In this document: one piece after another, positions 24,104-63,276 of the stretch | Layout: each line of letters opens with the position of its first letter | Numbering within the stretch: position 1 is the first letter of the stretch | NCBI GenBank assembly: GCA_965240325.2 | Contig: OZ251241.1 | Span: 248,001 to 312,000, forward strand | DNA length: 64,000 nucleotides | From: Rebecca billardiae RCC1528 | Taxonomy: Eukaryota > Protista > Haptophyta | Direction of reading: 5' to 3' | The notes under the pieces: model-generated | The model's database searches: none | Seen by the model: the letters and a program-made list of their open reading frames with translations, nothing else | What the model was told of the DNA's origin: nothing | Translations under genes and position numbers: made by a program

Positions 24104-24198
<95 letters not shown>

Positions 24199-24365
24199 GC
24201 AGCCTGCTGTGGGCTGCAACATGTTCTACGACGACGAGAAAATCCCAACAAGGAGTGTCTGCATCATATAAGTATGCGCCTGCCGCATCCGCCATCCAGG
24301 CATTGGTCACGTACGCAAGGTCAAGGACACATATATATATATATATATATTATATAATATATATA

Positions 24366-24407
<42 letters not shown>

Positions 24408-24412
24408 ATATA
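24104..24412. repeat. Two (TA)n microsatellite tracts (24104-24196 pure; 24331-24412 imperfect)
   Basis: Direct reading. Confidence 0.97.
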
Positions 24413-24797
24413 TGCGCTGGCAGCTACTGAGTACTGGTGCATGCTGACGATCGATAGGCGCGCGTATAGCAGCTAAATAGCGCAGCGCCGCCAGTGGCAG
24501 TGCCGAGTGCGCGCGCTGCGCTGCACGCACGCATCAATTCGTCGCATCATCGTCGTCGTCGCGATGATGATCATCTGCATCATCATCGTCATCGCGCGTG
24601 ATCGTCAGCGCACGACCGAGTAGCACATGCACGCCGCGTCGAGTAAAACGGCACTGCTGCTGCGGCGGCGGCGGCGGCGCGCTGCCACGCCACTTTGTGG
24701 CCTGCGCCAGCGCGCGCGGCTCGGCATCGACGCCACGGGCGGGTTGCCCGGTTCGCGGTCGTCGGTCGGTTCAGCTTGCAGTCAGCGCCGCGCCTGG

Positions 24798-29615: not shown

Positions 29616-31694
29616 TCAGGTGATCACCGTGGGCCGGTCGCGCCCGGTGAAGTGCTCGATCTGCGCGAGCTCAGCCGCGGCGGCGAGCACGTCGGCGAGC
29701 GCGTCCTGCGCGTCGCGGTGCAGCGCGTCCGGCCCCGCCTCTGCGTGCTCGTACCGCTCGGCGTACAGCCGCACCGTGGCGCCGACCGAGCCGGTGCCCG
29801 AGAGGCGGAAGACAGCGCGCGCGCCGCCCTCGAACTTGCACACCAGCCCCTGGTTGGCCGAGGTGGTGCCGTCGACCGGGTCCGTGTACGCGAACGACTC
29901 GACCGCGCTCAGGGCCACGCGCCCACCCGCGAGGCTGGCGGGCGGCTGCTCGTCGCCCGCGGCCATCGCGCCGAGCCGCGCCATCATGCGCTTGGCCGCG
30001 TCCGCGTCCACCTCCTCGTAGTCGTGCCGCGAGTAGTAGTTCCGGCCGTACGTGGCCCAGTGCGCGCGCAGCACGTCGCCCACGCCCACGAGCTGCCCCT
30101 CCGGCGTGGCGCCGTTGTGGTGCGCGAGGATGGAGAGCCAGCACAGCACCGCCCACACGCCGTCCTTCTCGCGCACGTGCGACGAGCCGAGCCCGAACGA
30201 CTCCTCGCCGCAGATGAGCGGGTCGTACGCCGTGCCGCCGAGCTCGCGCGAGTCCATCAGGTTGCCGAAGAACTTCCAGCCCGACGGCGTCTCGAAGCAC
30301 GGGATGCCCAGCTGCGCCGCCACGCGGTCGACTGCGCCGCCGGTGGGCATCGAGCGCGCGACCGCGCGCAGCCCGCCCGCCGACGCAAACTGCGGGAGCA
30401 CGTGCGCGTGCGCCGCGACGATCGCGATCGAGTCGGACGGCGTGACGAACGTGCCGCGCCCGAGGATCATGTTGCGGTCGCCGTCGCCGTCGGTCGCCGC
30501 GCCAAAGTCGGGCGTGCGCAGCCCGTCGAGGCCGGGCAGCGGCGCCCCCGTCGTCGAGAGGCCGAGCAGCTTGACGAGCGCGGCCGCGTACGTCAGGTTG
30601 GGGTCCGGGTGTGCGCCGCCAAAGTCGGGGCGCGGGTCGCAGCGGAGCAGGCACTCGTCGGGCACGCCGAGCAGCTCGCCGAGCACGCGCTTCATGTACG
30701 GGCCAGCTGCGGCGGGCAGGAGAGGCGCGCGACGCGGGGCGGGCGCCGCGGGCAGCGCTCAGCAGCCGCGCGCTGCCGCCACAGCGCGCGCGCTCTGAGG
30801 GCGCGCGCGCGGCGGCGCGCGAAAAGACGCACCGGCGCCGTGCATCGCGTCGATGCGCAGGTCAAAGTCAGAGCGCGCGAGCAGCTTGCGCAGCGCGTCA
30901 AAGTCGAAGCACTTGCGCAGCACCTCGACGTACGTCTCCGCGCTGTCGACGACCTCGACCTCGAACGCGCCGCCCGACTGCAGCGCAAAGCGGTGCACGC
31001 CCGGCGCGGAGAGGTCGATGGGCGGGAGGTCGGCCTCGCGGTACGCGTCGATCGTCTTGGTGCGCGCGTACACCTCGTCCGTCACCGCCTCCGTCGCGGG
31101 CCCGCCGCTCGCCATGTTGAACTTGATGCCAAAGTCGTTGTCCGGGCCGCCCGGGTTGTGCGAGGCCGTGAGCACGATGCCGCAGTACGCGCACCCGCCC
31201 TCGCGCTCGCGCAGGAGGGCGGAGACGGCGGGCGTGGCGATCAGGCCGTTCACGCCCACCCATACGCGCGCAACGCCGTTCGCCGCGGCGAGGCGCATGA
31301 TCGCCTGCGCCGCCTCAGGCCCGTAGTAGCGGCCGTCGCCGCCGACCACGATCGTCGAGCCGCGCAGCTCGTCCGCAGGGAGCACGTCGAAGAAGGACTG
31401 GACGAGGTTGGCGACGTAGTGCGGCTGCATGAAGACCGACGTGCGCTTGCGCACGCCCGACGTGCCCGGCTTCTGCCCCTCGATCGGCGACGTCGGCACG
31501 GTGCGCTCGGCGACGGTGTCGGCCGCCGCCGCCGCCATCGACGCGCCGCCGCGCAGCGCGCGCGGGAGCGGGCCGAGCGGGCGGCGCGCGCCGAGCGCGA
31601 CGGAGACAACCGAGCTCGTGGGCAGCGCGCGCACGGCGGCGCTCGCCGCCGCCGCCGTCGTCGCCGCGAGCAGGAGGCGCACGGCCGCGCGCAT
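29616..31694 (-). CDS. PGM: Phosphoglucomutase with N-terminal signal/transit extension; intron 30707-30832
   Basis: GQKPGTSG, TASHNPGG (phospho-Ser), DGDGDRN (metal loop), CGEESFG, C-terminal PTVIT*. Confidence 0.95.
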
Positions 31695-31985
31695 CGCGCC
31701 GCGCTTGCTGCTTGCCGCCGCTGATGACGCGTGTGGACTGATGACGCGCGTCCGAGCAACAAGGGCACAAGGCTGCCGGGCAGAAATCAAATTGCCGATT
31801 TGGCGGGGACGAAATCCCTCCAATCCGACGAAGCACGGGCTGTGCATTTTTTTTCTGCTCGGACTTGGTCACTTGGACCAGCAAAAGGCGCCAAGTCCAC
31901 TTTCTCCCAGCAGCGCGGCCGCCGCGCTCTGCTCGGTGGACGGCGTCTCCGGCCGCGCGCTTGCGTGGCGCGGCGGCAGCGGCGG

Positions 31986-51800: not shown

Positions 51801-53663
51801 GCGGTGCAGCGCTACGTCAGCCGGCAGCAGGAGGCCCTGCTCGAGCACCTGGGCTCGCTCGAGGCCTCCTTCAGCCTCAAGCTCGGACGGATTGCTGAGC
51901 GCGGCGGCGGGCCGGCCGCGCGCTCGGCGCTCGGCGCGGGCGGCGAGGACGAGGGAGCCGACACGCCCGGCGCGCTCGAGCCCCGCGCGCCCGGCGCGGA
52001 CGGCGGCGTCTCGGCGGTGCACGCCTCGCGCCTCTCCCTCCTCGAGCACCGCGTCGAGCGCGCCGAGCTCTCGACCTCGCAGCGCATCTCCGCCCTGCGC
52101 GCCATGGTCGAGTCGCAGGGGGCCGTGCTGGGCGACGTGCGCGCTAAGGTGCTGCGGCAGGCGGCGCTGGGCGCGCGACCGAGCGGCGCGGGCCACGGGC
52201 TCTCGGTGAGCACCGGCGGCGCCGGCGTCGGCGCGTGCGGCCTGGGCTCGTGCAGCTCGGCCGTGCGCAGCGCGAGCGGCGGTGCGGGCGACACGCCCGC
52301 CTCCTCTCCGCGCTGCGCACCCTCGGCGCACGCGGCGGCAGCCGGCGGCACAGACTTGATGGCCGGTGCGCGCGCGCGGACGCGCGAGCGCGCGCGGCGA
52401 GGCGCGCGCGCACGCGCGCGCCGCCCGCGGCGCGCCGCTCACACGCCCTGCCGCCGGCCGCGCCCCGCAGCAGCCGCCGGCGCGCCCAGGCCCAGCCCTC
52501 CGCGCGCGCAGCTGCACGCGTCCCTCGTGCGGGCGGGCTCCACACTGACGCTCTTCGAGAGGGGCAGGGTGTGGGCGCCGCGCACCCGCGCGCGGAGGCC
52601 GCGCGCCGTGGCAGGGCGGCCTCGCGCGCGGCGCGCGGGCCGGCGTGCCTGCCGTGCGCGCGCCTCCGACGCGCCCCGCGCCGCCGCTCTGCCGCGCACG
52701 CGCCGCCGCGCGCGCGCCGCGCGCGCAGGGCGCGGGCGCGCACGAGCTCGGCCGCCCAGTGCTGCGCTGGGTCCAGCTGAGCGCGGACGGGCGCACGCTC
52801 ACAGTCACGGACACGCAGCACCGCGCAAAGAAGCTCGCCATCCCGACCAAGGTGCGCGCAGCGGCGCGCCCGCCGGCGGCGCACGCGGCGGGCAGCTCGC
52901 GCGCAGCCGCGCGCGCCCCGCGCGCGCCCCCGCGCCCGCCCCGCGCCCTGCCCGCGCGCGCACTCGCGCCCGCCTCGATCATCTCGGTTGGCGCCGGTTG
53001 GCGCGTGCGCGCGCGGCGCCGCAGGACATTGCGGCGCTGCGCATCGGCGCGCTGCGGCCGTGGGCGGCGGCGGCGCCGTGGCTGCACTTCTCCATCGAGC
53101 TGCGCCCGGGCACGACCGCGCTGCCCTCGCCGCCGCCCACGGCCTCGTCGTCGCCCACGCGCGCCGCGCCGCCACCCATCGAGATGGTCACCTCGGACGG
53201 CGCCGAGCTCCTCACCTGGCTGCTCGGCTTGCAGTCGGTGGTCGTGCCGACCAACCCGGAGAGGAGGCTCACGCTCGGGCTGATCGCGCGGCACCGGCTG
53301 CGCATGATCGCGCGGCACCTGGCGGTGCGGCAGGGGCTGAGCTACAAGGAGTTCTGGGCGACCGCCATCCTGAGCGCCGCCGCCACGTACGAGAGCGCCG
53401 GCGACGAGCACGTGCAGCAGTGGCAGCAGCAGCGCGCGGCCGCCTCGCCGGCCGGCCCGCACGCGACGAGGCTCGCGAGCACGCGCCGCGCACTGCAGGC
53501 GAGCTTCGACGAGCCCGCGCGCCTAGCCGACGGCGCAGGGGCCGAGCCGCCCTCCGGGAGGCAGCGCTCCGCGCCGGTGGGCTCGCAGGGCAGCCCCACT
53601 CGCAGCGCATACCTGACGAGCGCGACGCGCTCCGCCTACGAGGACGATGGACCGGCGGAATGA
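47463..53663 (+). CDS. Large ankyrin-repeat / coiled-coil / PH-domain protein; introns about 47745-47885, 52366-52470, 52569-52728, 52852-53024
   Basis: About 6 ankyrin repeats (TPLMWAC, TPLHLA, TALHIAA), a long heptad region, and a split PLC-type PH domain ending LLTWLLGLQ. The intron 2 acceptor is uncertain. Confidence 0.8.
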
Positions 53664-53891
53664 ATGACGACGACCGCCGGATGATCGATCGCGACATATA
53701 TGCTTAGTCCGCGACTCATCCGATCGGACGACGATGATACTATCAGGTGATACTAAAGGACGATCAGACGATGCTGATGATGATGATACGATTGATACGG
53801 TGACTGATACTGATAGTGACACCTTGGGCTTGGTAGCCACGATGTCGATGATCGATTATATTGTTTTCTCGTCGCCACCACAAAAAAAGAA

Positions 53892-54959
53892 ATGTTCGCG
53901 CGCGCAGCAAGATGGCGGCGCGACAATTCATCAATGACCTCGCCTCAGCGAGGCCCGCTCCAGCTCGCGTGCGCCTACGTAGTGATCTTTGCCGTCGTTC
54001 TCACCGTTCTCACGGGCGTCCTTGTCACATCCTCTTCATTCCAACCAATGCCAGAGAGAACGGATGCGTCAGCCGGGCACTCAGAGCGCCCGCTCCAACC
54101 CCCGTCCTCTCAACAAGCTCGAATGCTGCGGTGCCTGCATGGGAGGTGGATCGTTCTCTACGGTGACTCCATTGTGCGTGGTGTGTTCCATGATCTTCGA
54201 TCTTTGCTCGAGGGCGCAGCGCCGGGGGCACTGCCACGCGAGCCTCACGACTGGAGCTACTCTGACTTCTGCCTCGAACAGCGTCGACGTGCTGCGCGGA
54301 CGAAGAATTACACAGCGTGCTCCATGTTTGATTACGTCACCTGCTCGGACGCACCCACTGTGCCAATGGTTGCCGGCGACGATGTCGCCATATCGCGTGG
54401 TCGGGGTGATCCCCAACCCTGCGAGCACCAATTCCAGCCCAAACGCACGCCTTGCCAAGATCATGGTGGAGGCAGTCAGCTGACACGGCTCACGTACTAT
54501 GGGAAGGAATTCGCCTACGACGAGTGCTTGGATTCTTCGATACTAGGCATCCTTGCCAACTGTGAGCCACGGCCAACCGACATCGTCGTCGGCAGCGCGC
54601 TCTGGGACATGCTTCATACAAGATCACAGGCCGAGTACGCCAGGCGAGTGCAGAAGCTGCTATCCGCAGTGCGCAAAGAGCCGAGGCTGACTGGGGTGCG
54701 GTTGCACTGGCTTGGGGCCACTGCTGTCGTATCCGACCTCTTGCCCCCCGAGCGCGCTGCAGTCATGACGTCGTCCAACTCGCAGGTCTACAACGAGATT
54801 GTGATGAACGTCTCTGAGCAAGGGGGTGGTCTCCCTGGAAACGGCAGCTACATAGACCTGTTCACACCCACAGCTGCGCATCCCGAGTTCTGCATAGATG
54901 GAGTTCATTACCCTGGCCTGGGTGCTCTGCCCCTTGCCACGCTGGACGCGCTCTGCTGA
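53892..54959 (+). CDS. PC-esterase/SGNH (GDS...DxxH) family protein with TM anchor, intronless
   Basis: CLHGRWIVLYGDSIVR, GSALWDML, DGVHY. Confidence 0.8.
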   Translation: MFARAARWRRDNSSMTSPQRGPLQLACAYVVIFAVVLTVLTGVLVTSSSFQPMPERTDASAGHSERPLQPPSSQQARMLRCLHGRWIVLYGDSIVRGVFHDLRSLLEGAAPGALPREPHDWSYSDFCLEQRRRAARTKNYTACSMFDYVTCSDAPTVPMVAGDDVAISRGRGDPQPCEHQFQPKRTPCQDHGGGSQLTRLTYYGKEFAYDECLDSSILGILANCEPRPTDIVVGSALWDMLHTRSQAEYARRVQKLLSAVRKEPRLTGVRLHWLGATAVVSDLLPPERAAVMTSSNSQVYNEIVMNVSEQGGGLPGNGSYIDLFTPTAAHPEFCIDGVHYPGLGALPLATLDALC

Positions 54960-55194
54960 TCGAGTACGGCTCAACTACTTATGACGACTCAATATGAGAC
55001 CGGCAGTCGTCACAGCACTCTGCGGACCGTCGGACAGGCTGTGCGGCCGGTGGCCGCGCCGCCGGTGGCACGGGCAGTGGCACCTCAGCTCTACTCAGCC
55101 TCGGTCTGACAGACTGATGACTACAGTGGCGCTGTTATTAATCGGTGCTCAGTGCTGAATATATATATATATATATAACTGATCAAGTTCGAAT

Positions 55195-56603
55195 TGTCGA
55201 AGGGAATGAAGAGCCCGAAACGACTGAGCTAAATCGGTTCGCGCCAACCGATTTAGCTCAGTCGTTTCGGGCTCTTCATTCCCTTCGACATAACCGTAAG
55301 TCTCCTGTGGGACACCCCGCGAGGGGCTGTAGTCCCGTCCAGTGTTCTGACGGATTTGTTGTCGAGGTTTTTCTCTCCCCGCCTGGTCTTTCCCAGGTGT
55401 TCCACCCTGCGTGCTCGTCTGCTCTGTGGCTTCGTAGAGACTCCGTCTTTTGTGGGCGGTGAGCCCTTCTTTGCTGCTGTGGCTTTGTGAGGCTCTTTTT
55501 GTGTCTTTGTTGTTCACCCGGGCGACTGTACCCGGAGGTTGCGCGTCGCGGACCGTGCTCGTTTTTTCTGTCGTCGTCTTTCTTTGTCGGTCATCTTCTT
55601 CGTGCTCCCCTCTTTCGTTCGTCTTTTTGCCGACTCCTCGCTTTTCATTCCCCCCCGGAGCCGCGAGGCTCTCGCGAGGTCGAAAGCGCTTCGCGTGAAA
55701 GGCCAAGAGTTGCCCGCGTCGGTCGGTCGCTGGATTCGAACAGGTGACTTTACGGTTGTGTCGAAGGGAATGAAGAGCCCGAAACGACTGAGCTAAATCG
55801 GTTCGCGCCAACCGATTTAGCTCAGTCGTTTCGGGCTCTTCATTCCCTTCGACACAACCGTAAAGTCACCTGTTCGAATCCAGCGACCGACCGACGCGGG
55901 CAACTCTTGGCCTTTCACGCGAAGCGCTTTCGACCTCGCGAGAGCCTCGCGGCTCCGGGGGGAATGAAAAGCGAGGAGTCGGCAAAAAGACGAACGAAAG
56001 AGGGGAGCACGAAGAAGATGACCGACAAAGAAAGACGACGACAGAAAAAACGAGCACGGTCCATGCGAGCCGCGCAGCGCAGGTGGATCGCGCTCCAGCA
56101 GCTCAAGGCCGCGCTCAAGCTTTACGATCGCGGTGCAGGCTATGCTCTGCCACCAACGCCGACTTCGTGTCGACGATCGGGCACTGCCGCCGACGAATCA
56201 GGAGACCCGCGTCGTCCTACCTGTGTCGTTAAATCATAGAATGGGTCCGCGACGCGCAACCTCCGGGTACAGTCGCCCGGGTGAACAACAAAGACACAAA
56301 AAGAGCCTCACAAAGCCACAGCAGCAAAGAAGGGCTCACCGCCCACAAAAGACGGAGTCTCTACGAAGCCACAGAGCAGACGAGCACGCAGGGTGGAACA
56401 CCTGGGAAAGACCAGGCGGGGAGAGAAAAACCTCGACAACAAATCCGTCAGAACACTGGACGGGACTACAGCCCCTCGCGGGGTGTCCCACAGGAGACTT
56501 ACGGTTATGTCGAAGGGAATGAAGAGCCCGAAACGACTGAGCTAAATCGGTTGGCGCGAACCGATTTAGCTCAGTCGTTTCGGGCTCTTCATTCCCTTCG
56601 ACA
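55195..56603. mobile_element. 1,409-bp fold-back (giant palindrome) element with three 96-bp hairpin units, TGT...ACA termini and 5-bp TSD CGAAT
   Basis: Units at 55195-55290, 55759-55854 and 56508-56603. CGAAT at 55190-55194 and 56604-56608. The two internal segments are reverse complements apart from a 186-bp indel and a 1-nt homopolymer difference. Confidence 0.88.
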
Positions 56604-56604
56604 C

Positions 56605-56607
<3 letters not shown>

Positions 56608-56684
<77 letters not shown>
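56608..56684. repeat. (TA)n microsatellite (a shorter tract lies at 55159-55177 on the other flank)
   Basis: Direct reading. Confidence 0.95.
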
Positions 56685-56686
<2 letters not shown>

Positions 56687-58728
56687 GATATGATGAGTGA
56701 GTGCGTGACTATATGACGACCGGGCCGCATTTGACAATCTAGATTTGAGCTGCGGGCCGCCGGAAAGGCAGCTGCAGCCATCAGGACAGTGGGCGCTTCA
56801 CGAAGCGGGCTTTCGCTGCGAGTGAGCCGGAGCGAGAGGCACGCAGCAGCGTCGGTTGGCTCGGCACCTGATGAAAAACCCAGTTCACCAGCAATTGGCC
56901 GTCCTGACCGCCGTCTAGTGGCACCAACCTCGCCTATTAGTATTAGCCGCTAAGACCCAGGAGCAGCGCAGCGAGTAAGTCGTTCTAGGCCGTCGTGCGT
57001 GCGCACAGAGCAGGCTCGAACGTCCCTCGTGGCACGAGAAGAGGGTGGCCAAGATGGTAGCCGGACTTGAGCTCGGCCGCCTGGCTCAGGCCGAATGGCA
57101 GGCAGGTGTTGATACGGCGCATTGCGCTCCCACCACGGTCCTCTTAGACAATCAGTTATTGTGCCAATAGCCCGACGTATATATGTATGTATAGCCGGCG
57201 CACTTACGCGGGCGGTGATGTGACGCCCGAGTGTCTCAGAGCGCCGCAGCGCCTGATGAGCGCCGGTAGACGGGTAGTGCGGAGTCGGCGCGGCCGTGCG
57301 GGCAGCGAGCAGTTCACGAGCAGCTCGCGCGCGCGCGTGCCAGTCCGAATCATCATCAGTCACTCAGCTGTCTCAGTAGTCAGTGCTTCCAACTCATATA
57401 ATTAATCAGCAGTATATAGACATGCAGAGTCAGTCGGTACGGACACTGAGCTCGGAGCTACTGTACTACGTACGTTGCCACTGGCCACTCTGCACTCACG
57501 GTCTCTCGCCGATCGGATGGCCGGCACTTTCAGCACGGCAAGTGCTCGGCCGGGCGGCCGGCAGCTGAATGCTTGAAACTGATGATATTTCGGATCGCGC
57601 GGTGACGATCGATTAATAACGTATATATAATCGTCATGTATCTTGCTTGCTGGGCCTATGCTGCGCTGTTCGGCTGATGCATGAATACAAGCCGCGCGCG
57701 GGCTCTGAGCGCGCGGTTCGTAGGCTCCGCGACGTTCTGACTCCGTCGTAGACCGTACTCAGTATACGCAGCAATAAATATATAGTAGTATAGCGACTCT
57801 TATACGACTATATATACGTTATTAGCGTCTTTACTCATTACACTGTTAGTCCGCCTCATATATCGATCGCCGGATCGGCGTCAGGCCGAATCATTGAGAA
57901 CGCGGTCCACTACAGCCCCGGAGCTCGGGGCTCCGGCTTTGGTCCACCCCCCCAGTCCGGTCACTGGAGCGTTACATCTTGACACTACTGCAATCGGCGG
58001 GATCGCCGCCGCCTCTGATGATCTACGATAGCTCCTAGACCACCCCAGGCGGTCCCTTGGACGACAATGTTACGGCCAGATGGATCATCATCTGTCGGAT
58101 CATCAGCCACACCGTGTCACTCTGGCAGACTGCCACACCTCGTCCTCCAATGGCAATAGGTTCAGACTCTATTTTCTATAACTAAATAGTAAATACCCAG
58201 TCCGGGTACCATTTTCGCATATTTATACAGGTGTCCGGAACGCTCCCGGGTTGTGCTGAAATATGAGTAAGGGACGGGTAATTATACAGTAAAATAGAGT
58301 CTGACGAACCTATTGGGAGGTGGTCGGATGCGACGCGACATTATTTATCTCGTTGAAGTCATCTGAATCGCCCAATCGGGGGTCGGCACGGAAGGGACTC
58401 TGCTGCATGGTCCGCTTGGTTGACTTCGGCTCGGGGCCAAGACGTAACGAAGCTGGGGGGGGTGGACCGGAGCCGGAGCCTCGGTGATGACTCGGTGTGA
58501 TCGGATGACGTGGCCGGGCTGCCGCATCAGAATGTTCGCCTGTCGCCACTGGACCGGCTGCAGCTGTACGGCGCATCTGGATGATGAGTAGCGTGTGCGG
58601 TGGTGGCTGAGGCAGCCATCGGCACCCAGTCGCGCTGCCTTCTCGGCCAGTCACTACTGCTCGGGGCAAGCACGTGGGTATCGGTCAGGACTCCCCCTTG
58701 CGGCGTGCGCGCTGCGGGTCGCGGTCGA

Positions 58729-60383
58729 TCAGTGGCCGTCCTTGTGATTCCCGCTGGGTGGCACCTCCACCTCTCCCTCCGCGAGCTCGCACTGAGACAG
58801 CGGCGCGCCGGTGTGGCCGCACAGGCTCTTGCCGAACATCATGCAGTGCTTGTCGGTGTCCATCGCGAGGTTGAACATGTCGCGGGGCGACACGCTCGGC
58901 CTGCAGTGCGCCTGCTCCTCCCCCCACGCCTTCTCGTCCTTGGGGCACGCGATGAAGTGCACGCCACGCTCGAGCCGCTCCGGCCTTGTGTTGTACGTGT
59001 TTTCAGCCATCTTGACGTACATGCCAGGCGGCCCGCGGAAGCCAGCTACCTCGGGCGGCATGTTCACGATGCCGTCCTCCGCGTTGAAGAACGTGTAGTG
59101 CTCGGGCACCAGCTTGGCGTAGAGCACGCCGAGCTCCTCCGTCATCACACGCGGCGGAGCAAACGCGAGCACGGCTGGGCGGCGCAGCCGCCACGCCGGT
59201 CGGCGCTCGCCTCCCTGCTTGAGCGGCATCTGCGACTGGCACGGCTGGTGGTTGGCGCACGATGCGTCGCCGCTCGCCGAGAACTGCGTGTCGTACATGC
59301 TCGCGATGTCCAGCGCGGCGATCATCGCCACCGCGCCACCGAGCGAGTGCCCCGTGACCATGAACCGAGGTGCGCGCGCGGCGGGCAGCTTGTAGAGCAC
59401 GTCCGCGTGCAGCTCGTCAAGGATCTGGTACACGGAGCCCTGCAGCTCTGAGCGGGCACGGGCGCGCGGAGGGCGCGGGAGAGCGTGAGTGGGTGTGTGC
59501 CGGGGCGGGGGATGAAGCGTGCGCGATGCGTGGGCGTGCGCGTACCTTGGAACGTCCAGTACGTGCCGGCTGTGAGTGGCGGGGTGAGCGGCGCGCGCGG
59601 CGGGCAGGCGCGCTGCGCGTCAGTTGCAAGGGCCAGGCGCGTGCCATGGCGGTCGCGCGCGCCGCGAGCCGGCGCGGTCGGCGCACCATGCCAGCCCGCC
59701 TTCTGCCAAGCTGGCCCGAGCTGACGGTACGGGAACTCCTTGCGCATCTGCAGCGAGATCTGCAGGTGCGTCTGGTCGACCGTCCCTTGGAAGCTCATCA
59801 CAACCATGTTGCGGCGCCGGTCGTACACCGTCAGGATGGTCATGTCCGCGTACGGCGCGCAGAACTCGCGGTGCCAGGTCACGGACACGAGCTGCTTGCA
59901 CGCGACGCACTGCCACGACGTCGCGTACCGCACCCACGGCTCGCGCGGCACCGCGTGCCAGCTGTCGTGGCAGTCGCCATCCTCTCCGTGCAGGCAGTAC
60001 GGGATGGACGCGATGTTGATGTGGAACGGGAGGTCCTGCTGGAGGAGGATGAAGGGCGCCGGGTACGCCTGGTCGCCGAGGACGCCATGTGGCTCGTACG
60101 GCGCGACCTGCTTCACCTCGCACCGGTCGAACCAGCCCGACTCGCGGTCGCCCCGGCCCTCGTACCAATCGCCGCACGAGCCTTGGTCCTGCCGCCGCGC
60201 GTACCCGCCGTCTGGGCCCATGACCCAGCACCACGGGTCGGCCACCGTGTTCGCCGAGCAGTCAGAGATGCACACACAGCCCTGCCGCGTGAGCTGCAAC
60301 CCCGTCAGGGCGCACGATGCGGCGCGCGCGAGGGCGAGCAGCAGCACGGCCCGCCGACACATGTGTTCATGCATGGGCGCCAT
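58729..60383 (-). CDS. Secreted class-3 lipase with Cys-rich N-terminal domain; introns 59570-59686 and 59448-59545 flanking a 24-nt micro-exon
   Basis: Signal peptide, SFQGT, TGHSLGGA, NAEDGI. The splice model restores colinearity with the adjacent paralog. Confidence 0.85.
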
Positions 60384-60660: not shown

Positions 60661-63276
60661 ATGCGCGTGCCCGCCAGCTGGCTGCTGCTGGTCGCGGGCG
60701 CGGCTGCCCATCTCGGGGACCTGCGGATCACACGGCAGGGCTGCGTGTGCCTCTCCGAATGCAGCCCCGCCGACGGCTACTGCTGGACGGAGGGCGTGGA
60801 AGGCGGTTACGGCCGGCCTGACGACGCCGGCTCGTGTGGCACGTACTACAACGCGCCTCACACCATCGACTCAGGCTGGCATGACGTGTGCATCTCGTCG
60901 CTCGAGCACCCGCCGTACACGCCGGTCGGCGTGCCTGAGTCGCAGGTCTTCCCGGACGCGCACACCGCCGTGCGCGAGGGCATCGACCACCTCAGGCTGC
61001 TCGCGCTCATCCCGTACTGCCTGCACGGCAACACGGGCGACTGCTACGATTCGTGGCACCACAGCCCGCCCGAGCCGTGGGTGGGCAACGCGCGTGCGTG
61101 GCACTGCACGGCGTGCCGCACGCTCAGCACCGTCACATGGCACACCGAGCGCTGCGTGCCCTGGACTGACGCGACGATCCTCGCGGTGTACGACGCGGCG
61201 CGCAACATGGTCGTCGTCTCCTTCCAGGGCACGGCCGACCCGACCACCGAGGCGTACGACCTGCGGCTGCGGCAGGAGCACCCGTACACCCGACTGGGCA
61301 GCGTGTGGCAGAGCGTGGGCATCCACACGGGCTTCTTCTCCGTCTTCCAGGAGCTGCACGGCTCGCTGTACGATGTGCTGGACGAGGCGCACGCGCAGCT
61401 ACTCGGCTCGCTGCCGGAGGCGCCCGCGCTCGTCCTCACCGGGCACTCGCTCGGCGGCGCGATCGCGATGATCGCGGCGATGGACCTCGCGAGCATGTGG
61501 GACACGACGCACTACGCGCATGACTCCACGTGCTCGCCGAGCAACCCGTGCCAGTCGCAGATGCCGAGGCAGAGCAACGGCCACTTCCGGCCCGCGTGGC
61601 GGTTGCGCAGGCCGGCTGTCGTGAGCTTCTCCACGCCCAAGCTCGGCAACGCGGGCTTCGCCGAGATGTACCAGGTGCTCGTCACGGAGAGCTACCACCT
61701 GTTCAACGCGGACGACGCCGTGCCCAGCACCCCGCCCTCGTACCTCGGCTACTCCCCGCTGCCGGGCGTGCAGGTGAAGTTTGCGACCGGCACGTTTGCG
61801 AGCGGCTGCGGCGGCGAGCTGCGCACCCACTACTCGCTGTGCACCGGCCCGTCCACCTCAGCCGCGTGCAGCGCCAACTCGGGCGGCTCGGTGTGGGACA
61901 TGATCTCGCTGATCTCCGACTCGACCGTGCACTGCAACATGTGCGCCCAGCCCATCTGCGCGGCCGACAGCGCCATGTGTGAGAGGTCGCCCGACCTCGT
62001 GCCATCGCCGCCGCCGCCGCCGCCGCCGCCGCCGTCGCCCAGCCCGCCACCGCCCAGCCCGCCGCCGCCGAGCGTGCCGCCGAGCGCGCCGCCGGGCTCG
62101 CCGCCGAGCGCGCCTCCCAGCCTGCCGCCGAGCCTGCCGCCGAGACCGCCGCCGAGCACGCCACCGAGCGCGCCGCCAAGCGCGCCGCCGAGCGCGCCGC
62201 CGAGCCCGCCGCCCAGCCCGCCGCCCAGCCCGCCGCCCAGCCCGCCGCCAGACCCGCCGCAACGCCCGCCGCCTCCGAGCCCACCGCCTATCCCGCCCAG
62301 CACGCCGCCCAGCACGCCGCCGAGCCCGCCACCCACTGCGCCGCCCGCCCTACCGCCTAGCCGACCGCCAGGCGCGCCGCCTGGCATGCCGCCCAGCGCG
62401 CCTCCCGCCCCGCCTCCGACCCCTCCGCCACCGGCCGGGCCGCCGAGCCGGCCTCCGCCGCAGCCACCGCCATCCTCACCGCCACGGCGGCCGCCCTCGA
62501 GGCCGCCACCACCCGCGCCGCCGCCGCCTTCGCCGCCGCCGCACCCGCCGCCGCCGTTGGCGCCGCCGCCGAGCGCGCCGCCGCGTCTCCCACCACGCCC
62601 GCCGCCCACGCCCCCTCCATCGCCGCCGCCGCCGTACGTCGCAACAGGGAGCTCGGCCGTCGGCGCGACCGGCGGCGACGATGACGGCGACGGCAGCAGT
62701 GGGCGCGGCGGCGCCTCCACCGGCACGTCGGGGCGCTCGCCGCTCGGCGGGGAGCCGTCGCAGGAGGCGTCTGCCGCTGGCGCGCAGGGCGCCACCCTGC
62801 AGGCCATCGAGGCGCTTCTGGTCGTCCTCGCCGTGTGCGGCGCGCTGGCCGCGTGCGCCGTCTGCGCGTACCGGCTGCGGCTGCCGTCCATCCGCCGCCG
62901 GCGCGCGCTCGAGGCGATGCGCGGCAGTGACGGCGAGCTGCCGACCGTCAGCGTTGACGGCGGCGCGGCCTCGCGCGAGCCGAGTGCGACCGACGGGAGC
63001 GGCGGCGGCTCCCAGTTGGCGCGCCGCCTGAGCGATGGCCTGGCGCACGCTGGCATCGGCGCGGCGGCCAACGCGCACGGCGGCGACGACGTGGGCACCT
63101 CGGCCGTGCGCTGCTCGCCGGTCGAGCCCGCCGCAGCGAGCCAGGCGGCGCACCGGCCCGACCCGGCGGGCGCGCCGCCGCCAGGCGAGGCGCACGCGAC
63201 GAGCGAGATCGAGCTCGCCGATCTGCACGGCGGGCGGCAGCGCGGGCTCGCGCAGGCTGGGTGGAGGCCGCCCTGA
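60661..63276 (+). CDS. Cell-surface class-3 lipase: signal peptide, Cys-rich domain, lipase domain, Pro/Ser-rich stalk, TM helix, cytoplasmic tail; intronless
   Basis: SFQGT, IHTGF, TGHSLGGA, NADDAVP; about 210-aa SPPP stalk; TM LLVVLAVCGALAACAVCAY. Confidence 0.88.
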   Translation: MRVPASWLLLVAGAAAHLGDLRITRQGCVCLSECSPADGYCWTEGVEGGYGRPDDAGSCGTYYNAPHTIDSGWHDVCISSLEHPPYTPVGVPESQVFPDAHTAVREGIDHLRLLALIPYCLHGNTGDCYDSWHHSPPEPWVGNARAWHCTACRTLSTVTWHTERCVPWTDATILAVYDAARNMVVVSFQGTADPTTEAYDLRLRQEHPYTRLGSVWQSVGIHTGFFSVFQELHGSLYDVLDEAHAQLLGSLPEAPALVLTGHSLGGAIAMIAAMDLASMWDTTHYAHDSTCSPSNPCQSQMPRQSNGHFRPAWRLRRPAVVSFSTPKLGNAGFAEMYQVLVTESYHLFNADDAVPSTPPSYLGYSPLPGVQVKFATGTFASGCGGELRTHYSLCTGPSTSAACSANSGGSVWDMISLISDSTVHCNMCAQPICAADSAMCERSPDLVPSPPPPPPPPPSPSPPPPSPPPPSVPPSAPPGSPPSAPPSLPPSLPPRPPPSTPPSAPPSAPPSAPPSPPPSPPPSPPPSPPPDPPQRPPPPSPPPIPPSTPPSTPPSPPPTAPPALPPSRPPGAPPGMPPSAPPAPPPTPPPPAGPPSRPPPQPPPSSPPRRPPSRPPPPAPPPPSPPPHPPPPLAPPPSAPPRLPPRPPPTPPPSPPPPYVATGSSAVGATGGDDDGDGSSGRGGASTGTSGRSPLGGEPSQEASAAGAQGATLQAIEALLVVLAVCGALAACAVCAYRLRLPSIRRRRALEAMRGSDGELPTVSVDGGAASREPSATDGSGGGSQLARRLSDGLAHAGIGAAANAHGGDDVGTSAVRCSPVEPAAASQAAHRPDPAGAPPPGEAHATSEIELADLHGGRQRGLAQAGWRPP
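62001..62634 (+). repeat. Extensin-like (S/T/A)PPP coding repeat
   Basis: Direct reading of CCG-rich 12-nt units. Confidence 0.9.

Follow-up and report, generated by a model that had tools for sequence, protein, structure and literature searches.

A non-coding P-A-P-A'-P element with palindromic repeats at one locus of Rebecca billardiae RCC1528, possibly inserted by an integrase-type enzyme

The element is located in contig OZ251241.1 of Rebecca billardiae RCC1528, within the window (the whole 64-kb stretch of DNA that was analyzed). It is non-coding, measures approximately 1.4 kb, and has the order P-A-P-A'(inverted)-P, where P is a palindromic repeat and A is the body; the internal order is taken from the assembly alone. 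The locus is an AT-rich spacer in a gene-rich nuclear region of a eukaryote with approximately 72% GC. A phosphoglucomutase fragment reached no more than 70% identity, to a metagenome protein, and had 53-57% identity to named proteins of stramenopiles, haptophytes, kinetoplastids, and green algae. The features, with coordinates of the window, were the following:

53934-54959, + strand: neighboring gene with a 341-aa product (P0001), no family assignment; its stop codon is 235 nt upstream of the element
55159-55178, no strand: (TA)9 tract, target context outside the element, 12 nt to the left of it
55190-55194, no strand: left copy of the CGAAT duplication, abutting P1 and identical to 56604-56608
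55195-55290, no strand: P1, left terminal repeat (arms 55195-55239 and 55246-55290, center CGCGCC, tip TGTCG)
55291-55758, + strand: A1, short-form body, 468 bp, non-coding
55759-55854, no strand: P2, central palindrome, same as P1 and in the same orientation (symmetry point 55806/55807)
55855-56507, - strand: A2, long-form inverted copy of A, 653 bp
56063-56248, no strand: segment of 186 nt present in A2 only, with no partner in A1
56508-56603, no strand: P3, right terminal repeat, exact reverse complement of P1 (center GGCGCG, tip ...CGACA)
56604-56608, no strand: right copy of the CGAAT duplication
56607-56684, no strand: (AT)39 / (TA)39 tract, target context outside the element, 3 nt to the right of it and beginning inside the right duplication copy

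A preliminary description of this DNA had given the same P-A-P-A'-P order, and the three P copies were confirmed at the positions listed above. It had also taken the entire 1,409 bp to be self-complementary about 55806/55807, which is wrong: the left half has 612 nt and the right half 797 nt, and 186 nt are left unpaired. Apart from this segment, one homopolymer base (a one-base discrepancy between the halves in a C7/G6 run), and the center of P2, the arms are complementary at 100%. When folded as a single strand, the element forms a 611-bp stem without a loop, and the 45-nt arm is present three times per half. Nested insertion of one monomer into another was considered and dismissed, because the inner units have no flanking 5-bp duplication.

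Each P is 96 bp long and consists of a 45-nt arm, 6 nt, and the inverse 45-nt arm. The arm comparison agreed with the make-up proposed earlier (45-bp arms around CGCGCC, or GGCGCG in the third copy): all six P arms are identical, and not one match turned up in 100 shuffled controls. P folds into a perfect 45-bp hairpin (−58.2 kcal/mol, z = −18.5). P2 is identical to P1, with the same center, and P3 is the reverse complement of P1. Since P is palindromic, it is a direct and an inverted repeat at once, and its boundaries are fixed by the three copies standing in differing contexts.

Over approximately 18 nt, the two ends of A match in inverted orientation, with one mismatch and one indel, as had been noted before for the subterminal repeats; together with P, these ~18 nt give the monomer an inverted repeat of approximately 115 nt. 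On the + strand, A1 is pyrimidine-rich (38% purine, and 62% purine on the other strand). The 186-nt segment is bounded by the pentamer GGTCC at 56058-56062 and again at 56244-56248, and has no counterpart elsewhere within the 64-kb window. Between these 5-bp repeats, either A1 has suffered a deletion or A2 has received an insertion.

The outer tips read TGTCG...CGACA (TG...CA), and the same tips are found at every P. CGAAT lies directly on both sides of the element, and the match between the flanks stops at exactly 5 bp in this one copy (n = 1); flank comparison thereby bore out the direct repeats and the neighboring (TA)n tracts of the preliminary description. The target is AT-rich at this single site (n = 1): the duplication abuts (AT)39 and is 12 nt from (TA)9. 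By chance, a 5-bp direct repeat would be expected in approximately 1 in 1000 cases and TGTNR tips in approximately 1 in 128. GC content is 52-59% in the element and approximately 72% in the window, and the flanking spacer is low in GC too.

Support for the locus was obtained from short reads. The junction of the left flank and P1 is crossed by contigs L001 and L002, which come from two independent short-read assemblies of different runs (ERR14847148 and ERR14847151, of which at least the latter is DNA). One of the assemblies represents a different allele, and the (TA)9 tract is shorter by one unit in L002. Each run gave a single unbranched contig across the flank, and both contigs stop at one and the same base, 27 nt into P1. 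Other P copies or poor coverage of the hairpin could be behind this shared stop. The presence of the left junction in independent assemblies argues against a simple long-read chimera.

Seven ORFs of the element were tested against Pfam and none matched. For the 220-aa ORF that runs through P1-A1-P2, no protein relatives were found, and exact look-ups for two element ORFs returned nothing. The 110-aa ORF over the 186-nt segment had a lone match among 1.8 billion representatives (32 residues, 34% identity, sevenfold repeated in a 6637-aa protein), which was rejected as repeat-inflated chance. Rfam matches were confined to miRNA-precursor models, generic for hairpins and all well under the gathering scores; as family assignments they were rejected as well. 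The idea that P or the end of A resembles a tRNA was likewise discarded (none by ARAGORN; a T-arm-like TTCGAAT motif had no matching stem). No further copies of P or A are present in the 64-kb window, which has the element at a single locus. Exact and gapped patterns of P and A had no match in viral (2.9 million contigs), metagenome, and prokaryotic collections, and the whole element had none by blastn in phage and plasmid records; because the host genome is absent from all of these collections, this is weak evidence. Over the window and the same outside collections, which lack the host genome, neither a second copy, an empty site, nor an autonomous partner was found. Among the 35 long ORFs of the window there was no integrase or transposase, including the integrase-like DDE type with an H2C2 zinc finger, and no replication, nicking, or telomere-resolvase gene was found in the element or the window.

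In the reading judged best, and held with about even confidence, the element is non-autonomous, was inserted by a DDE enzyme of the retroviral-integrase type, closest to Ginger2/Tdd, and would have become a dimer by snap-back or template switching at P. Mobility, enzyme class, and snap-back origin are what we infer from the structure. An integrase-type footprint had been claimed before; the TGTNR tips and the 5-bp duplication uphold it as far as one copy shows, and the accompanying word 'family' is unproven. Tip patterns and duplication lengths of Ginger2/Tdd and LTR elements have been described (PMC2836005, PMC10045372). The TGTNR pattern is that of Ginger and Gypsy, with termini 5'-TGTNR...YNACA-3' (PMC2836005), and the tips of the element conform to it. 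Ginger2 has inverted repeats of 50-180 bp and a duplication of 4 or 5 bp (5 bp in TDD-4/5) (PMC2836005, PMC10045372); the monomer inverted repeat of ~115 nt is within that range, the arm itself being 45 nt, and the 5-bp duplication of this one copy resembles that of TDD-4 and TDD-5 of Dictyostelium. This one insertion site (n = 1) is AT-rich as well, which may suit the Ginger2/Tdd target preference, AT-rich, RTATAY (PMC2836005, PMC10045372). The element differs in that its outer 96 bp form a perfect hairpin palindrome and in its inverted dimeric form, which has a third repeat in the middle, neither of which is described in PMC2836005 or PMC10045372, and no transposase was found among the 35 long ORFs here.

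The element also resembles fold-back or long-repeat hairpin MITEs (FB of Drosophila, Galileo, and Tm1), as its long inverted arms make up nearly the whole element, the terminal motif occurs in several copies, and it is non-coding. MITEs are found at high copy number, as near-identical copies at many sites; the window has one locus. However, FB, Galileo, and Tm1 belong to P, MULE, and other superfamilies and have 7-9-bp duplications and different tips, whereas a 5-bp duplication and TG...CA tips are present here.

Under the Ginger2/Tdd-like reading, the basic unit would be the monomer P-A-P, whose terminal repeat is P plus ~18 nt. P would fold back on a single strand, and synthesis would then run back through A and the first P to give P-A-P-A'-P, either by self-primed snap-back synthesis before integration or by two template switches in place. 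A DDE enzyme encoded elsewhere would join the outer tips to target ends staggered by 5 bp. Later, the loss from one arm, or the gain in the other, of 186 nt between 5-bp repeats would have broken the perfect palindrome. With either snap-back route, P3 should be the reverse complement of P1 and P2 should keep its own asymmetric center; P3 as the reverse complement of P1 together with P2 identical to P1 is predicted by snap-back copying of the monomer and not by fold-back of half a P. In yeast, hairpin-driven fold-back and template switching that give inverted copies have been documented (PMC10766183, PMC7467729).

The same anatomy could be that of a small hairpin-ended linear replicon (rolling-hairpin ssDNA or hairpin-telomere dsDNA), integrated in its turnaround or dimer replicative form and, as a non-coding satellite, served by an unseen helper; this was considered unlikely. 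Here P would correspond to the terminal hairpin after conversion to duplex, the ~18 nt to the non-palindromic inner terminal repeat, and P-A-P-A'-P to a strand synthesized with the 3' hairpin as primer and the genome as template; homotelomeric rolling-hairpin genomes may offer a parallel in architecture. The terminal palindromes fit, as the molecular ends fall on their outer edges, a single P joins the head-to-head bodies as at concatemer junctions of hairpin-telomere replicons, P2 has an asymmetric center of its own, and the terminal repeat extends past the palindrome. The two center orientations, with P3 the reverse complement of P1, look like flip and flop, but given the overall symmetry P3 can have no other orientation, so this gives no independent evidence of flip/flop. 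Moreover, any palindromic terminal repeat would yield the P-A-P-A'-P anatomy equally well through snap-back synthesis or template switching. Neither the 5-bp target duplication nor the TG...CA tips would be expected of such replicons, the element body (468-653 nt) is geneless, no helper and no replication gene were found in the element or the window, and nothing similar was present among the 2.9 million viral contigs or the phage and plasmid records. Of the replicative dimer proposed in the preliminary description, the internal anatomy fits, whereas the target duplication is unpredicted and a replication or integration gene was not found. Little probability was also given to a combined form, in which P-A-P would be a miniature self-priming, hairpin-ended DNA satellite of a protist, copied by the rolling-hairpin mode and inserted by an integrase-type enzyme, with this locus as a fossil turnaround form. 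If true, it would couple hairpin-primed copying to DDE integration, a combination undescribed for eukaryotic mobile DNA. A further alternative is a TRIM-like miniature LTR retroelement, whose palindromic 96-bp LTR would prime itself to give a snap-back cDNA of double length that an LTR-element integrase inserts. Such elements are small and non-coding, with short identical direct repeats like P1 and P2 and TG...CA ends; 5 bp is the commonest duplication length of LTR elements, and the body is strand-asymmetric, with 62% purine on one strand. A length of 96 bp would be at the lower limit of known LTR sizes. Unlike in TRIMs, the repeat is palindromic and the body is duplicated in inverted form. 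A polypurine tract is absent beside any P (purines make up 55% of the neighboring 20 nt, without a purine run), and a primer-binding site was not found: the best match to the 3' end of tRNA Pro-CGG was 7/21, 16 nt from P, which is a weak test as this was the only tRNA in the window. The TRIM-like retroelement is disfavored and was considered very unlikely, and the TRIM half of the earlier 'TRIM/Ginger-like family' loses support with the missing polypurine tract and primer-binding site (one tRNA tested).

Two further explanations do without a dimeric mobile element. If the assembly were at fault, the true locus would be simpler (a monomer P-A-P or a solo P), and the second A would come from a fold-back read or a mis-join at P. 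Perfect palindromes and inverted arms of near-100% identity are typical of fold-back chimeric long reads, a one-base difference in a homopolymer run is a typical long-read error, and the short-read contigs end 27 nt into P1 and leave the interior uncovered. On the other hand, unique sequence and a matching 5-bp duplication stand on both sides, and the left junction recurs in two short-read DNA assemblies that are independent of each other. Between the arms there is a clean difference of 186 nt, bounded by a 5-bp repeat, that a chimera of one template would not create, and P2 retains the asymmetric center of P1 in place of a symmetric fold-back center. Merging of haplotypes is spoken against by the one unbranched contig per short-read run over the flank. 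Overall, an artefact was considered quite unlikely. A non-mobile, local palindromic duplication, produced by a replication error at a pre-existing short palindrome, was judged highly unlikely. Short inverted repeats do seed inverted duplications via hairpin intermediates, and ODIRA and yeast fold-back inversions have an inverted copy centered on a short palindrome or inverted repeat, as here (PMC10766183, PMC7467729); a single copy is known, which also suits this explanation. Those events, however, are triplications or duplications into the flank, and fold-back at a break would duplicate the flank in inverted form, whereas here the flanks are kept and, on either side, the duplication goes precisely as far as the outer edge of a full P. 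Chance would also have to yield both the 5-bp repeat and the TGTNR tips. The GC difference between the element and the window speaks against a local origin too, weakly, since GC is low in the flanking spacer as well.

Seen at one site so far, the element would be an unusual form of a transposon type already known. A gene ends 235 nt upstream of its perfect 611-bp hairpin, which is likely a source of double-stranded RNA. The element would bear on the origin of fold-back elements, on the tolerance of long palindromes and their subsequent breakage by asymmetric deletion, and on the links of transposon ends to hairpin-ended replicons. As a single copy only, it would be a local curiosity. If more copies exist, integrase-type DNA transposons would be extended to a poorly sampled, very GC-rich eukaryote, and one terminal repeat would be seen to combine direct, inverted, and hairpin-forming properties, a design that predicts self-priming and inverted dimers.

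The non-coding element consists of three copies of a 96-bp hairpin palindrome, P, separated by two bodies, A, in the order P-A-P-A'(inverted)-P. Its parts are as follows:

55190-55194 and 56604-56608, CGAAT, putative 5-bp target-site duplication
55195-55290, P1, 45-nt arm, 6 nt and the inverse arm; centre CGCGCC
between P1 and P2, A1, 468 bp
55759-55854, P2, identical to P1; centre CGCGCC
between P2 and P3, A2, 653 bp, inverted relative to A1
56063-56248, segment found in the right half only, 186 nt; pentamer GGTCC at both edges
56508-56603, P3, exact reverse complement of P1; centre GGCGCG

The arms of P were identical in six of six cases (none expected by chance), and a single strand of P forms a hairpin of 45 perfectly matched pairs (−58.2 kcal/mol, z = −18.5). 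A begins and ends with inverted repeats of ~18 nt (one mismatch and one indel), which gives the P-A-P unit an inverted repeat of ~115 nt, the palindrome making up its outer 96. No further P was present in the window, including in a search with the terminal 17 nt at three mismatches, and nothing similar to P or A was found elsewhere in it.

The left half was globally aligned with the reverse complement of the right half. The preliminary description was largely correct in what it observed, except that it took the whole 1,409 bp to be self-complementary: the halves differ by the 186-nt segment on the right, by one base within a C7/G6 run, and by the asymmetric centre of P2. The remainder is 100% complementary, so that the single-stranded element forms a stem of 611 bp interrupted by one side bulge. 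The tips read TGTCG...CGACA and are abutted on the outer side by CGAAT, where the direct-repeat match stops at 5 bp. A (TA)9 tract lies 12 nt left of the left CGAAT, and an (AT)39 tract starts within the right one.

The element is located in a spacer of lower GC (55-58%, 55.0-58.6 kb) within a window of ~72% mean GC; the stop codon of the preceding gene, whose 341-aa product belongs to no assigned family, lies 235 nt upstream of the element. The window genes are ordinary eukaryotic nuclear ones: RING/CCCH zinc-finger, bestrophin-like and SAM-domain proteins, phosphoglucomutase, ATG9, an RRM-MraW methylase, a histidine kinase, a GT61 glycosyltransferase, an ankyrin protein and a class-3 lipase. 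One tRNA-Pro was found, and no family reached its gathering score in the Rfam scan of the window. A phosphoglucomutase fragment was 70% identical to a metagenome protein and 53-57% identical to named stramenopile, haptophyte, kinetoplastid and green-algal proteins. The host was accordingly treated as a GC-rich, poorly sampled protist or alga. The phosphoglucomutase gene (29616-31847, minus strand; 755-2833 in L003, a public short-read locus) is divided into two ORFs with 63 nt between them, most likely by a short intron, since an independent short-read contig shows the same split as the window.

Several other repeats were noted. Long pure (TA)n tracts occur in the intergenic spacers (24104-24196, 24331-24413, 55159-55178 and 56607-56684), and three of the four are adjoined by the pentamer CTGAT (55179-55183, 56685-56689 and, as the reverse complement, just left of 24104), which may represent what is left of a repeat, or a motif that recurs in spacers. 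Within an inverted-repeat structure 1.3 kb right of the element (57926-58483; 28-nt arms, 89% complementary, 502 nt apart) lies a short AT-rich unit whose own 14-nt inverted repeats are perfect (58162-58175 and 58291-58304); the structure may represent a further small transposon of this spacer. Inverted stretches at 59287-60013 and 61001-61506, matching over 71 nt (87%) and ~245 nt (70-74%), lie beside and partly within the lipase ORF (60661-63276) and look like diverged head-to-head paralogous pieces.

The gene adjoining the element was present on two public short-read contigs, L001 (run ERR14847148) and L002 (run ERR14847151). Both cover the left flank, CGAAT and then 27 nt of P1, where they end (window 55221), which shows the left junction to be genuine and shared by two isolates. 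L001 was identical to the window across 3,064 bp. L002 differed over 52856-55221 by two small indels in the left flank (a 3-nt indel and one TA unit) and is thus another allele or strain; as it has the same flank/P1 junction, the insertion is older than the split between the two. A third contig, from run ERR14847151, retained the 63-nt gap within the phosphoglucomutase gene, which identifies that run as genomic DNA, not RNA. The shared contig end falls three bases earlier than 31-mers predict from the repeats of this locus alone; possible causes are additional copies of P that follow AAT, or a hairpin poorly covered by reads. The internal order of the element is that of the assembly alone. A fold-back read artefact is unlikely: the flanks are unique and carry a matching duplication on both sides, the 186-nt difference is clean and bounded by a 5-bp repeat, the central P retains the asymmetric centre of P1, and the flank contig is unbranched in each short-read run.

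Pfam assigned no family to seven ORFs of the element, and the 220-aa ORF spanning P1-A1-P2 had no relatives. The single match of a 110-aa ORF over the extra segment was rejected as repeat-inflated chance, and Rfam matches to miRNA precursors were sub-threshold and reflected a generic hairpin only. Viral, metagenome and prokaryotic collections and phage and plasmid records, none of which holds the host genome, yielded no relative of the element. No integrase, transposase, reverse transcriptase or replication protein was found among the 35 long window ORFs scanned.

The boundaries of P are set by its three copies in three different contexts, and the 5-bp direct repeat at the outermost two is the footprint of a staggered-cut insertion. 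The TGTCG tip matches TGTNR, a pattern common to Gypsy LTR elements and Ginger transposons (PMC2836005). In Ginger2/Tdd elements the inverted repeats measure 50-180 bp, the duplication is 4 bp long (5 bp in TDD-4 and TDD-5) and the targets are AT-rich (PMC2836005); another source lists a duplication of 4 or 5 bp for Ginger2, as against 6 bp for Polinton and 3-6 bp for LTR elements (PMC10045372). The fit is poorer for GingerRoot/IS3EU, with 6-bp duplications and tips that are mostly TA...TA, and for IS481EU, with duplications of about 4, 15 or 25 bp. Since the duplication and tips fit the Ginger2/Tdd values, the insertion was probably made by an integrase-type DDE enzyme encoded elsewhere, as judged from one copy.

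The interpretation offered in the preliminary description is supported in part. Its dimer of a hairpin-ended replicon fits the internal anatomy strikingly. In homotelomeric rolling-hairpin genomes the terminal repeat continues beyond the palindrome, and the ~18-nt extension here may be analogous. Such a replicon, however, does not account for the target duplication or for the TG...CA tips, and with no supporting gene or viral relative it is an unlikely source. A TRIM-like retroelement, which has direct repeats, tips and duplication in common with the element, is very improbable, as it should have a polypurine tract and a primer-binding site, and neither was found (the latter with the window's single tRNA as query). 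Least credible is a purely local, non-mobile duplication, in which both duplication and tips would have to come from chance and the flank would be expected to be copied too.

For the inserted element, a head-to-head dimer would form if the 3' P of a single-stranded P-A-P folded back and were extended, giving P-A-P-A'-rc(P). This snap-back predicts that the last repeat is the reverse complement of the first and that the middle one retains its asymmetric centre; P3 and P2 agree with both predictions. Had the fold-back simply occurred at half a P, the centre would be symmetric. Dimerization might have preceded integration, on a free single-stranded intermediate; occurred in situ, with a resident monomer undergoing two template switches, of which the later one would be enabled by pairing of the newly made rc(P) with template P; or followed from homologous recombination between a dimer circle and a resident solo P. 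All three routes can give the same product. The simplest source of the 186-nt difference, which lies between 5-bp repeats, would be that one arm was later shortened by deletion; long palindromes are known to gain stability through asymmetric deletions. In yeast, short inverted repeats are documented sites of template switching driven by hairpins and of fold-back copying (PMC10766183; PMC7467729).

Known here from one copy, the element has a Ginger2/Tdd-like footprint but does not count as a proven member of that group, which is defined by its transposase. It is best classed as a non-autonomous fold-back element with an integrase-type footprint, in which the terminal repeat is a palindrome.
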